The notes beneath the pieces were generated by a model, which was given only the letters and a program-made list of their open reading frames with translations, was not told the DNA's origin and made no database searches. Of a stretch of DNA of 64,000 nucleotides, positions 7,631 to 60,200 are shown in pieces. Position numbers and translations under genes: made by a program. How positions within the stretch are numbered: position 1 is the stretch's first letter; each line of letters begins with the position of its first letter. The DNA comes from Eutreptiella sp. 'Long Island Sound 2002' (lineage: Eukaryota; Protista; Euglenida), in contig OZ038378.1 of NCBI GenBank assembly GCA_964036045.1, forward strand, positions 10,664,001 to 10,728,000, read 5' to 3'.

Positions 7631-9882
<2,252 letters not shown>

Positions 9883-35445: not shown

Positions 35446-36530
35446 AGGAAAGCCTGGCTGCCCTGGACCCAGTGGTCACACATGTCTGCAGTCGTGACAA
35501 TCGTTCGGGAAGGGGTATGCGGGTGATTGCTTGGAGCAGCTTCAAGTGAAATCTGCCGCATGTGCGACAGCCAAGAAAATCTTTGACCCTTCCTCCATCT
35601 GACCTGCAGAACCTGAATCTCGGTGAAGAATCATGGCACATCGCAGGGCATCCAAAAACACAGGTCTGCTGGGCTTAAGGTTTGGTACATTTCGAAGCAT
35701 GTGCGTGCAGGTTTCAGGTCCTGGCTCCTCGTGGCAGGGGCCCATGTCAGATGCAGCAGTCCTGTGTTCCTAAAACAAATTAGCCAATACATGATCATGA
35801 TTGGACAACATACCTAACCATACCTAACCCCAGTCATGATGCCAAAAACCCCTTAATATATATGGAGGGGGGGGGACCAGGCCCAACTGCTCTAATCTAC
35901 CTGTCAAAGTTTTGCAGGGGGGGATGGCATCAAATGGTTGGTCAGCTGAACTGGATGTCCCCGCCATAGATAATTCCAGCCATTGTTCTCAGCAATTTTG
36001 CATTGCGTCCGGGTTTTTGCTAGGCGACTGTCCCGGTGCTTCCGCCCTTGTTCTCGTGCTGTCCTTCCTTATGTACACTTGTCCATCACCACTATGTACG
36101 CTTTGGTGACCGTGGCTTAGACTCTACCAGGTGAGTGGCGTACATTCTGGTCAAGGGTCAGTCCCGCGGAGCACCTGCATCTTGCTGGCCCCATTCGGCC
36201 AGTACCCCAGGGGACGTCGTATGTGGTATGTGGGGGATGGTTGGGGGCAGGGGCTCGCTTGGGGGGTGGGCTGCGGGCAGCGGTGGATTTGTTTTGGTTT
36301 TGGTTTCGGGAGGCACCAGGTCCATGGCCCCTGCGCCTCCGGCAGTGCACTGAGCCTAAGACCATGGTCACTATATATGCTGTGCCTCCTCTGGGCCGCG
36401 TACCTGTTTGGGGGCGTTGTCGCACGGTGCGCGCACGGTGCGCGCACGGTGCGTGCACGGTGCGCGCACGGTTCAATGTTTTTGGGATGGTTGCCCAACT
36501 TGTACCCCGTTGAATGGCCCCCATAGAAAC

Positions 36531-36822
36531 CAGGGGTTGCCATAACAAAAAAAAAAAACTCGGAGTGTCCAATACGCCCTATGATGGCGGCCGGTGGGTA
36601 ACTGATGGCGGTTGGTGGGTAACCGATGGCGGTTGGTGTGTAACCGATGGCGGTTGGTGTGTAACCGATGGCGGTTGGTGGGTAATTGATAGCGGTTGGT
36701 GTGTAACCGATGGCGGTTGGTGGGTAACCGATGGCGGTTGGTGGGTAGCCACCAAACATCAGAGAGTGGCTGCCTTAGTGAAAAAAAAAAAAAAAGACTG
36801 AGCGTCCTTATGGCAACCCCTG
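36531..36822. mobile_element. hAT-like MITE (292 bp): 15-bp perfect TIR CAGGGGTTGCCATAA, 8-bp TSD ATAGAAAC, internal 21-bp array (8 copies)
   Basis: The TSD lies at 36523-30 and 36823-30. The paralogous copy at ~59019 has a single ATAGAAAC (empty site). The internal unit is GATGGCGGTTGGTGGGTAACC. Confidence 0.92.
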
Positions 36823-37101
36823 ATAGAAACACACCCAGGGTCCTGATTTCTGCACCTTGCAGTCCATACTAGCATACCAAGATTCTTCAATTTTTAGTCT
36901 GATGCTTGTCACAGGTTCCAGGGTCCTATTTTCTGCACCCTGCAGCCCCTATTGGCGTACCGGGAATTTTTTTTTTTGAATCTGATGCTTGTCACAGGTT
37001 CCAGGCTCCCAATTTCTGCACCTTGCACGCATCTCCGTAACAAACCATGCACAGGCGACAACACAAGCGACAACAATGGTTGGGTTACGGGAATTTCAAT
37101 T

Positions 37102-37437
37102 TCATCCGCCACAGCATTCTGGCTCATGATCATCAATTCTAGGGGCTTCAGCTTCCACTTAAGGTAATTGGGGCTCCAGCAAAGCGTCCATCGGCGCCTC
37201 ATGGTGCACAGGTTGGGGGGAATCGGGGCTCTCAGTAGTCACAATTGCAAACTCCAACCGCTCCTCGGGTGCATGCTCGTACAAGACCTCTTCACCACCC
37301 AATTCGTACCGAATAGAGACGCGGCGCCCACCTCTTGAAGAAGGGTCAACGACAGTGGCCGACACCCTATCCCCGTTGGAGCGGTGGTAGTACACAGGCA
37401 GTCCGGCGACAAGCCAAGGCAGCTCAGATTCAGGCAA
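37102..37437 (-). pseudogene. Cargo ORF of the 808-bp element, copy 1 (start mutated to TTG, internal GAA>TAA)
   Basis: LPESELPWLVAGLPVYYHRSNGDRVSATVV...LEPQLP* followed by VEAEAPRIDDHEPECCGG*. It aligns with 59299-59634. Confidence 0.6.
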
Positions 37438-38174
37438 TGTGGATCTGCCGGACACAGAATAAGCAAAAGGACGCACGGTGCGCGCACGGTGCGCGCACGA
37501 TTCAGGCAACACCCCCTTTATGCCGAAAAAGTAGACGCAGCTCCTACCTGGATTCAAACTAGTACCTTGTGTCTGCACCGCTGCTACTTGTCCTCTAGGC
37601 CGGACTCTCGGCAAACCGCATTCTTGGGCCACCCTCTCCAATGTGGCCACTGACCGCTACCTGCGAGCCTTCTGCTGGGCATGCCACATGGTGTGGGCCC
37701 TCTGCGGGCACTTACACTTGGCGCCAGCCTCCGTTGGGCACCTGTTGCCTCTGGACCGTGGTCTTACTGCCCGCTGCTTGCTCCAGTGTCTCTAGCTCCC
37801 ACGGTCTCCCCCTGTTCACTAGACTTTGGGCCGAGCCTCTCGCTGCTCGCTGCCCACTGCAGTGTGTACTGGGGCTCAAACATGGGACCCACAATGCCCA
37901 CACGGAGGCCTTTGCTTCATTCGCGTGGCCACTTGGGACCCGCAACACCCACTCGGGGGCCATTGCTACAATCGCCGCTGGGCCCCTCTCGGCGCCATAT
38001 GGACACTCACAGGGCGCTTGTTCATATACTCTGTGCACTCGGAGCGCCACGCAGGCGTTCACGGGGCGCCCATGCAGTTGTGGTGCGCCCTCAATGTGCC
38101 AACCAGGCGCTCTCTGGGCGCCTTGCAATAGCTCTTGGGGCGCTTGTTCATCTACGGTGTGCCCATGGATCCTC

Positions 38175-57200: not shown

Positions 57201-60200
57201 GGAAACGTGCAGTTTTGTGGGTGAGCTGCTCATTACTGCCCCCGTGCCCCCGTGGTGCCCATTCCCCTGCGGGCACCGGAACGTGCAGTCACGCCCAGAA
57301 TCGTTGGGTTCTGAGGGTGTTCCCCACAACATGTGATGTCGCACGTGCAACCCAGGGCCAGGGAGGCGTCGGGGGGACGGGGCGGGGCTGAACCATAAAA
57401 TGAGGTCAAAAATAATGGACCGGTCCGAACTTGCAGCAGAACGCACTTGTCCAAGGTTCGTCGACGCTGAGCCATGCAGCATATGGGCTGTCCGCAAATG
57501 GACCAGCCCTTTTGCCGCCAACCAATCGGCACCCGCCCCGCCTGCCGCACCACGTCCCTCATCACGGACAGTGTCCATGAGCACTTTGCCGTGACGAGTG
57601 ACAAAAGCAGACAATTCCAACCACGACTCACGAAATTGGTCGGGGGGTTGTTCCATACAGGCTGGCTGCCCCTGCCCCTGCCCCTACCCCTGTCCCTGCC
57701 CCTGCCCCTGCCCCTGTCCCTGCCCCTGCCCCTGCCCCTGCCTGTTTGTGCTCCTGCTATTACGCTCTGCCTGTGCCCCTGCCTCAGCTCCTGCCCATGC
57801 CTCGGCCCCAGCTCCGGTCACTGCCGCTTGCTAAGGCCAAAAGGCAACCTGAGCGCGGTCGGAGGCGCGTGCGTCCCAGAGCTTCAGCGTGAAATCGTGA
57901 CTGGCGGACACGAAGACGTCGCTGTTCTCGGGCTGCAGTGAGATCTTGTGCACCGCATCATCGTGCAGGTACCGCCCCACGGGGCTGGACCCGCCCTCAA
58001 CGTCGTACCGCAGGATCTGCCCGTCGTTGCCTGCACTGTAGAGCTGCGTGTTTCCGGTCGCCCACCGCACATCGAACACGTTGGAAGTGTGGCCCTGCGC
58101 GCGTGTGTGTGACATGGGGTACGCCAGATCCACGGGAGGCATGGGGGTGTGGAGGCGACAGTGACATGCGAGGCATGTCGAGTGAAGGGGGCATAGGACG
58201 CCTGGGCTGTGGCAACCCTCTGCAATCTGTACACCCGAAGGACTGCATTCGCAAGGGTCTGAGAAACCTTTGCACCATCACCCCCATCAGCCCCGCGTAT
58301 TGACTTGTGCCCGATGCGGTAGGTCTGGTGGTTGGAGAAGCGGTAGGTCTGGCGGTTACAAGACTGGGGTCGGGCAGTCGGTGGACAGAAGCGGGTGTTG
58401 CTTGAAGGGGTTTCTGCCCCTGAAGCGCATGCCTGGGGTTGGTGGTGTCGGGGTGCTCACAGGGCCCGGGGGGGACATGTGCGTCGCGGCGTTTCCTACT
58501 TCACGTAGTACAATGAATGCGCGAGAGATTGGACACTGAGCCTCAGGTACCCCCCCCCCTTGCGCAAACACGGGCCAGGTTCTGGTTCCAGGACCAAAAG
58601 TGCGGAAACACGGGGTCCCCGTGTTTGGACAAGCCCGTGTTAGCGCGCGGCACGTACTGCGGAACACAAGTTGCAGGCATAGCCCAACCAGTCGTTCATG
58701 ACTATGAACGACAACAGACCGGCATACACCCCAGGGTACAAGAGCACATGGAATTATAGCTGTAGCAACACTTTGTCACCCATATTGACCCTTCCTGCAT
58801 CCTGCACAAAGCTATAAACCACGTTCTCTATTGGATCAGAACCGCAAAAACGACGGTTCAAAAAAAGGACCAAAAGTGCGGAAACACAGGGTCTCCGTGT
58901 TTGGACAAGCCCGTGTGGGGGCGTTGTCGCACGGTGCGCGCACGGTGCGTGCACGGTGCGCGCACGGTTCAATGTTTTTGGGATGGTTGCCCAACTTGTA
59001 CCCCGTTGAATGGCCCCCATAGAAACACACCCAGGGTCCTGATTTCTGCACCTTGCAGTCCATACTGGCATACCAGGACTCTTCAATTTTTAGTCTGATG
59101 CTTGTCACAGGTTCCAGGGTCCTATTTTCTGCACCCTGCAGCCCCTATTGGCGTACCGGGAATTTTTTTTTTTTGAATCTGATGCTTGTCACAGGTTCCA
59201 GGCTCCCAATTTCTGCACCTTGCACGCACCTCCGTAACAAACCATGCACAGGCGACAACACAAGCGACAACACTGGTTGGGTTACGGGAATTTCAATTTC
59301 ATCCGCCACAGCATTCTGGCTCATGATCATCAATTCTAGGGGCTTCAGCTTCCACTTCAGGTAATTGGGGCTCCAGCAAAGCATCCATCGGCGCCTCATG
59401 GTGCATAGGTTGGGGGGAATCGGGGCTCTCAGCAGTCACAATTGCAAACTCCAACCGCTCCTCGGGTGCATGCTCGTACAAGACCTCTTCACCACCCAAT
59501 TCGTACCGAATAGAGACGCGACTCCCACCTCTTGGAGAAGGGTCAACGACAGTGGCCGACACCCTATCCCCGTTGGAGCGGTGGTAGTACACAGGCAGTC
59601 CGGCGACAAGCTAGGGCAGCTCAGATTCAGGCATTGTGGATCTGGTGGACACAGAATACGCAAAAGGATGCACGGTGCGCGCACGGTGCGCGCACGGTGC
59701 GCGCACGGTTCAGGCAACACCCCCTGTTAGCGCAAGGGGAGGGGGGGTACGTGGCGCCGGAGGCCGTGCCCACAACTCATCGACAGAATGCCAAGGCACG
59801 CTGAGGGATCAGCATCACAAATTGTACCAAGACAGATCCCTGAGAAATTCCAGCGGGTGACGACCAACGTCGTTCTGATGGCCAAGGGGGCCCGTTGCGA
59901 AGGGGTAGGGGGGGGGGGGGGCGGGGGGGTTGCAAAAAGTGTGCGTTCTGGCCGGTCGAGCGGGTGTTCTGAGTCAAAGCATGCCTTCGGTCACGGCCCC
60001 CTGTTTCTACCCCCACACCCCACATCCCCAGTGGAATTCTTGACCTGCCCCGCACCCGCTTTGGCACCGCCGCGTCCTCTGCCCCCTCCAGCGCGTCCCT
60101 CACCAGCCCCTTGCCGGTGATAAGATGGTAACGCCGAGGCATGCCCCATGTGGTACCACCAGCGCCATGCGTCAGTTGATCATGTGGAGCGGCATGGGGG

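Follow-up and report, generated by a model that had tools for sequence, protein, structure and literature searches.

A window of 64,000 nucleotides from the euglenid Eutreptiella sp. 'Long Island Sound 2002' was analyzed, corresponding to C1:10664001-10728000 in an assembly of 2.28 Gb, of which C1 makes up 201 Mb. The window contains two copies of a short DNA transposon, referred to here as copy A and copy B, each with a frame of 111 codons on the minus strand (Table 1). A previous description made from the letters of this DNA alone, the sequence-only reading, had presented them as two Harbinger-like elements of about 808 bp that carry a mobile mini-gene as cargo. Both coordinate pairs and the relatedness of the copies were confirmed, as they can be aligned over their entire shared length with 97.5% identity across the shared columns; the length applies to copy B, while copy A measures 1,107 bp through the presence of a nested 292-bp element. 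It also holds for both copies that they encode no transposase. The interpretation that we favor, with a probability of about 0.7, is that internal deletion produced the 808-bp elements and left the 111-codon frame as the truncated beginning of a gene that belongs to the element itself and is not captured cargo.

At the borders of the elements, the 3-bp target-site duplications (TSDs) described earlier, TTT for copy A and TGT for copy B, were both found. The 12-bp G-rich terminal inverted repeats (TIRs) are also present on both copies, in an imperfect form: 10 of the 12 bases agree between GGGGGCGTTGTC and the reverse complement of GGGGGTGTTGCC. These GGGGG-type ends, with the same 10/12 agreement, are kept in all copies. 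Tandem repeats of an 11-bp unit lie next to each end, and one such unit separates the length classes of 808, 819 and 820 bp. The unit is almost its own reverse complement, which makes it less odd that the units have the same direction at both ends.

A genome-wide DNA search returned at least 1,510 candidates. Identity to copy B was 99-100% for the best 40, and at least 30 further genomic copies with this identity each possess a separate 3-bp duplication. Perfect 3-bp TSDs, comprising 26 different triplets, were observed in 49 of 52 distinct sampled copies; together with the shared ends, they identify the family as a transposon and not a segmental duplication, in agreement with the sequence-only reading. 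The copies are divided into a TAG and a TGG class according to codon 8 of the frame, with pairwise identities of 99.6% and 98.4%, respectively. The family was active very recently, because 140 copies are 99.6% alike. The aligned targets form a degenerate palindrome, composed of C-N-C, then H-W-W, then G/A-N-G/C. TNT triplets represent only 11 of the 49 duplications and TAA or TTA represent 6, so that the target preference is weakly TWA-like, and the preference for TNT proposed earlier did not survive the larger sample.

In copy B, the frame begins with an ATG (59634-59632) located 90 bp inside the 5' end in the sense of the open reading frame (ORF), and is interrupted at codon 8. In copy A, both the start codon and the continuity of the frame are lost. 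The ORF attributed to the two copies therefore exists as a frame, with intact versions elsewhere in the genome, and is broken in both copies of the window. The stop at codon 8 was common to all 35 sampled TAG-class copies, and exact 29-mers over this codon were found genome-wide in 140 copies with TAG and 315 copies with TGG, with 0 matches for the controls. The term mini-gene is difficult to apply to a frame that is broken in both window copies and whose 140-copy subfamily spread with a stop at codon 8. Variable sites were distributed similarly in the ORF (41 of 333) and in the non-coding part (47 of 396), and 16 of the 41 ORF variants were synonymous, against an expected share of 0.348 if mutations are transitions (p = 0.62). 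The variation among copies is neutral, without sign of purifying selection, and the latest burst, that of the TAG subfamily, came after the frame broke; the ORF is therefore not needed in cis. The GC content at third codon positions (GC3) is 0.58 in the ORF versus 0.8-0.93 in host exons. An alternative genetic code with TAG as a sense codon was ruled out, as host exons and other copies have TGG there and TAG ends frames elsewhere.

The origin of the frame was approached through its relatives, which were collected by word and exhaustive protein searches. Their identity ranges from 99% down to 39%, and the Met start is kept. The exhaustive search gave 40 matches, all but one of them short ORFs, and the ones that were checked all derive from ENA assemblies; the 1,768-aa bacterial protein P0064 (28%) was taken as a chance match. 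No host paralogue of the ORF was found in either search, all relatives being located at the 5' end of related elements, and no relatives were found in the viral, prokaryote-genome and metagenome collections. In several matching ORFs, the translation also takes in the 5' subterminal repeat, which precedes the barrel in the same frame. Judged from these sequences, the ORF, which is predicted to form a small barrel (see below), is a hallmark of a whole clan of elements, always beside the 5' end.

In a sister family, the single frame of the ORF P0076 (100% identical to C6:37503614-37504363) runs from the barrel through a linker rich in Pro and Glu and a basic stretch to a conserved helical module. 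P0079 and P0062 correspond to P0076 cut after residue ~165 and ~80, respectively, and fused to one shared 3' tail; when compared with P0076, they represent a nested deletion series within the sister family. The module, which comprises three helices and lies 3' of the barrel in the longer ORFs, has a fold model of low confidence, and it is found immediately after the 5' repeats in barrel-less sister lineages. The fold model of a 250-aa sister-family ORF (mean predicted local distance difference test, pLDDT, 55.6) was too poor as a search query. Using the module-only ORF P0097, 326 candidates were obtained. On C5, the family ATG at C5:27877116 is followed after 492 nt (164 codons, in frame) by a module match within a 320-codon open frame, and on C1 a second module match lies 491 nt downstream of the family ATG at C1:6241122. 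The family-specific 29-mer is present at C5:27877076-27877104 and C1:6241134-6241162, and identical 320-codon module matches were observed on C13 and C19. These longer copies of the window's family are known by coordinates only, and by these coordinates the short copies have their 5' coding start, and presumably their ends, in common with longer copies that hold more of the gene, as in non-autonomous internal-deletion elements. Taking together the short ORFs at the 5' end of elements, the nested series and the longer copies in frame, the 111-codon frame is therefore best understood as a stump of the element's own gene. The capture of cargo by a Pack-type element, as suggested by the sequence-only reading, does not agree with relatives that occur only in element families, with a start position fixed beside the 5' repeats, or with the in-frame longer copies and the deletion series.

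Two further loci of the clan were recorded. At C1:66843895-66844905 (minus strand), a 670-codon open frame comes after the barrel, linker and module in the same orientation, which makes this locus a candidate for an autonomous member of the sister family. At C8:7382974-7383321 (plus strand), a full-length barrel match (47% to P0062) lies within a stop-free frame of 950 codons, a candidate for a complete gene of the clan without introns.

Based on these observations, the elements belong to a cut-and-paste family within a clan characterized by GGGGG...CCCCC ends, 11-bp subterminal repeats and 3-bp duplications. The parent gene would start 90 bp inside the 5' end and encode a Tudor-like barrel and an acidic linker, continuing in longer copies into the in-frame helical module. 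The internal deletion that gave the 808-bp form would have cut this frame at about codon 111. An enzyme encoded at another place would then mobilize the short copies, which can dispense with their own ORF, and the youngest subfamily, including copy B, would have reached about 140 copies after the stop at codon 8 arose. For the partner, we infer a Harbinger-type enzyme to which the barrel exon would be spliced, with the upstream acceptor in use.

Table 1. Features of the two element copies and their surroundings in the 64,000-nucleotide window
Feature	Position	Strand	Description
Copy B	58917-59724	- (ORF)	808-bp non-autonomous element, young TAG subfamily
TSD of copy B	58914-58916 (left); 59725-59727 (right)		TGT
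TIR of copy B, 3' end in ORF sense	58917-58928	+	GGGGGCGTTGTC
TIR of copy B, 5' end in ORF sense	59713-59724	-	GGGGGTGTTGCC, minus-strand reading
Subterminal tandem repeat, copy B	58928-58968		11-bp unit, 3.7 units
Subterminal tandem repeat, copy B	59670-59709		11-bp unit, 3.6 units
Internal tandem repeat, copy B	59031-59224		83-bp unit, 2.3 units, in the non-coding 3' part
111-codon frame with stop, copy B	59299-59634	-	predicted Tudor-like barrel (residues ~5-66) and acidic tail; TAG at codon 8 (59613-59611)
Pyrimidine-rich tract and CAG	59642-59669	-	tract 59669-59645, CAG 59644-59642; candidate spliced-leader acceptor, CAG ending 7 nt before the ATG
Uninterrupted target site, paralogous	58590-58646	+	within a small palindromic repeat unit
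Copy A	36410-37516	-	1,107 bp, older composite copy
TSD of copy A	36407-36409; 37517-37519		TTT
Frame of copy A	37102-37437	-	TTG replaces ATG (37437-37435); TAA at codon 93 (37161-37159)
Nested element in copy A	36531-36822		292 bp; ends CAGGGGTTGCCATAA and its inverse; 8-bp duplication ATAGAAAC at 36523-36530 and 36823-36830

An AlphaFold2 model of the ORF was built on 21 relatives. With a pLDDT of ~90 for residues 5-66, it contains five strands and, C-terminal to them, an acidic tail that is disordered. The best structural matches were the Tudor domains of PHF1, PHF19, MTF2 and TDRD3, and the next ones were PWWP, KOW and chromo-barrel domains. The Tudor domain of PHF1, which ranked first, gave a VIA Z of 8.6, a root-mean-square deviation of 2.0 over 56/56 residues and a Foldseek E of 0.014. 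The model thus predicts a Tudor-like, five-stranded SH3-like barrel, with a resemblance at the level of the fold and at the edge of significance. With respect to a possible aromatic cage for methyl-lysine or methyl-arginine, Y17 is invariant and Y44 nearly so across the relatives of the barrel. No Pfam match was obtained for the ORF at E values up to 10, no PDB sequence match was detected with its profile, and the ESM Atlas gave no usable match.

The pyrimidine-rich tract and the CAG 7 nt upstream of the start codon were found as previously described. The tract consists of 25 nt, 72% of them pyrimidines, and such a context is present at only 2.3% of the ATGs in the window. The 24-mer spliced leader of Euglena gracilis has 3,309 exact occurrences in the genome, while its reversed control has 0; the dinoflagellate spliced leader had 0 matches. 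Genome size and the leader spoke against a kinetoplastid or dinoflagellate origin, and the leader together with long, intron-poor, GC3-rich exons against human or other vertebrate DNA. With spliced-leader trans-splicing operating in this organism, any gene located there would need an acceptor just upstream of its ATG. Most simply, the tract and CAG would be the spliced-leader acceptor of the parent gene, passively inherited by the short copies. In a sister family, P0081, a complete 154-aa ORF from a transcriptome collection, crosses the 3' subterminal and terminal repeats into the flank, and sense read-through transcripts of such short elements therefore exist. The earlier observation that the frames point in the same direction as the host genes was also reproduced, with 7 of 8 high-GC3, sense-like ORFs of the window on the minus strand.

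Among the first 100 places listed, on C1, the leader 24-mers are scattered over both strands with irregular spacing and are not just tandem arrays; they may represent dispersed leader genes or retroposed leader-bearing cDNAs. They are spread along the listed part of C1 (to 126 Mb), with the middle included. The 26 TGG-class copies listed on C1 are all located below 48 Mb or above 145 Mb, and the TAG class is distributed likewise. This distal concentration on C1 may reflect gene-rich distal regions or insertion guided by chromatin.

Regarding the superfamily, the label Harbinger-like proved reasonable. Autonomous members of this superfamily encode a DDE_Tnp_4-type (IS5-like) transposase and, as a second gene, a Myb/SANT-like helper. 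Of the DNA-transposase signals found in the genome, PF13359 (DDE_Tnp_4) is much the most frequent, with at least 3,193 candidates, many of them with intact frames, and 150 that scored above the cut-off. The 3-bp TSDs and the short 12-bp TIRs with GGG-type ends are traits of PIF/Harbinger elements, while the TWA triplet typical of them is confined to the 6 TAA or TTA cases among the 49 duplications and 26 triplets. The TSD length, the end sequence and the abundance of DDE_Tnp_4 point to a PIF/Harbinger assignment.

Several results weigh against the interpretation of the frame as the front end of the element's own Harbinger-type gene. The continuity of the gene itself depends on offsets, which would place barrel and module together in the 320-codon frame. 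In the flanks of the copies, the AT skew favors the ORF-sense strand in 38 of 51 cases (p = 0.0006), although this proxy is not calibratable. Such a bias would be in line with a Pack-type Harbinger-like element whose captured host fragment forms a mini-gene without a promoter, which host read-through transcripts would express by way of its own acceptor, an explanation that also gains from the trans-splicing of the host with its thousands of leader 24-mers, the rarity of the tract and CAG context, the passage of the P0081 transcript ORF into the flank and the common orientation of both window copies and the host genes. However, the three orientation proxies disagree, since a codon model gave 16 to 6 with no call for 29 flanks and a strict GC3 rule gave 2 to 5. 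As no host paralogue was found, all relatives occupy the 5' end of related elements, the deletion series and the longer copies continue the frame, the ORF is interrupted in the two copies of the window as well as in the subfamily of 140 copies, the variation is neutral and the codon usage is unlike that of host genes, we consider the capture of a host fragment improbable.

The 315 copies with TGG at codon 8 raise a different objection, as at least 14 of the 17 sampled have a complete frame from ATG to stop, and a function for the short ORF fragment in intact copies is conceivable. The truncated barrel protein could act in trans as a regulator or helper of transposition, perhaps by competing for the ligand of the barrel, which would fit with the retention of the barrel over many families and with the sense transcripts of the sister family. 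The intact copies, however, were chosen for long open frames and are a biased sample, purifying selection was not seen among copies, and the newest burst belongs to the subfamily with the stop codon, which makes such a role unlikely. A more specific version, in which the ~300 intact short copies express a free Tudor-like barrel from read-through transcripts of the host via leader addition at the CAG and modulate the insertion site or frequency of the transposase, is highly improbable; if true, it would describe a mobile promoter-less regulator gene spread by the very element under its regulation. Finally, none of the top 150 DDE_Tnp_4 places lies within 10 kb, correctly positioned, of any barrel or module match, and the genome search with PF13613 (HTH_Tnp_4) gave no match and that with PF04827 one uninformative match. 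Together with TSDs that are mostly not TWA, and with frames of 670 and 950 codons after or around the barrel or module that exceed typical Harbinger enzymes, this could indicate a different superfamily with 3-bp TSDs, such as a CACTA/EnSpm-like, Zator, Academ or undescribed one. Against this, Harbinger subgroups with other target triplets have been published, such as ANT (PMC12477816), the ends do not start with CACTA, the target logo is a degenerate palindrome around a TWA-like core, and no other DNA-transposase signal found in the genome approaches DDE_Tnp_4 in abundance. We regard an origin outside PIF/Harbinger as rather unlikely, and internal deletion of the element's own gene remains the preferred explanation.

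Around copy B, an empty site had been cited in confirmation of the TGT duplication. Positions 58590-58640 are indeed 96% identical to 58866-58916 and continue as ...CCCGTGT/TAGCGC with no insertion; this uninterrupted site is a paralogous repeat unit 276 bp upstream and not an allelic one. The palindromic unit (arms GCGCAAACACGGGC / GCCCGTGTTAGCGC) is present twice, 276 bp apart, at 58559-58646 and at 58866-58916 plus 59725-59751, and the downstream one of the two received copy B. The whole block is enclosed by a poly-C/poly-G inverted pair (~58547 and ~59750) and may itself be a further small element with inverted repeats. With its 2 mismatches, a solo end-like match at 58391 was attributed to chance. 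In the case of copy A, the nested 292-bp element has 15-bp inverted ends beginning with CAG and internal tandem repeats of ~24 bp, and is hAT-like by its TSD length. At another locus (L046), the nested insert occupies the identical position under an outer TSD different from that of copy A; therefore, the composite itself transposed, and the insert was inherited and is not private to copy A.

In the flanks of the copies, 10 long ORFs were scanned and nothing was found beyond a reverse transcriptase and a PARP gene. The reverse-transcriptase ORF (RVT_1, E 6e-21) lies near one element copy at L041:8165-10000 on the minus strand, and an exon of the PARP catalytic domain (E 4e-20) is located at L044:6996-7985 on the plus strand, 1.7 kb downstream of a copy and on the same strand as its ORF. 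At L052, the element is inside a long tandem array that encodes, in more than one frame, repeats of a Cys-rich motif of ~20 residues; the array is satellite-like and not a gene. Within the window, an exon of an RCC1-repeat gene is present at 7631-8812 on the minus strand, and its frame opens with ~100 leucine codons, corresponding to (CTG)n on the coding strand.

Among known systems, rice mPing is a deletion derivative of PIF/Harbinger with Ping-Pong autonomous partners, which underwent a recent burst, is mobilized in trans and is enriched in gene-rich regions. The elements described here are similar in being short internal-deletion copies with 3-bp TSDs and ends presumably in common with longer elements, and in their recent burst to hundreds of near-identical copies. 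They differ from mPing in that the TSD is not a fixed TWA, the ends are of the GGGGG type with 11-bp subterminal repeats, the short copy retains ~111 codons of the parent's first ORF, and the partner is a candidate only. With Pack-MULE and other Pack-type elements, they share the organization of a non-autonomous TIR element with an ORF-bearing interior; unlike in those, the interior is not host-derived, its homology being confined to 5' coding regions in related elements, and a nested deletion series is seen in the sister family. Drosophila P elements that have lost internal sequence, KP among them, retain a short ORF for the N-terminal part of their own protein and encode truncated repressors. 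Many copies of the present family likewise hold an N-terminal fragment of their own protein as a short ORF, whereas their newest burst, unlike KP, has a stop at codon 8; production of the fragment and a repressor role for it would be hypothetical here.

In retrotransposons, Gypsy-10_Ec32 has a C-terminal Tudor domain and was called the first mobile element known with such a domain (PMC12477816, 2025). The present family resembles chromoviruses and Gypsy-10_Ec32 in having a small barrel of the Royal-family type on a mobile element, and in copies that are strongly enriched in particular chromosome regions. In contrast to Gypsy-10_Ec32, it is a DNA transposon in which the barrel is N-terminal and without a Pfam match, and binding of histone marks would be hypothetical. 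A MITE-like origin (miniature inverted-repeat transposable element) has been proposed for the nonconventional introns of Euglena, which have CAG(+3)/CTG(-8) motifs (PMC12501133). Like these introns, the window element is a euglenid element with inverted ends and short direct repeats flanking it; the CAG(+3)/CTG(-8) motifs were not found at its ends, and its removal from RNA would be hypothetical. For a DNA-transposon gene that opens with a Tudor-like barrel, there appears to be no published case.

The two copies in the window are ordinary, broken decay products of a non-autonomous kind, belonging to a family that is unusual and very young. Of more interest is the parent lineage, in which the predicted barrel is placed at the very start of a DNA-transposon gene and has been conserved across many families that have diverged. 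Should the barrel direct insertion to particular chromatin, these elements would offer a simple system for the study of target choice in an organism with unusual transcription and splicing.

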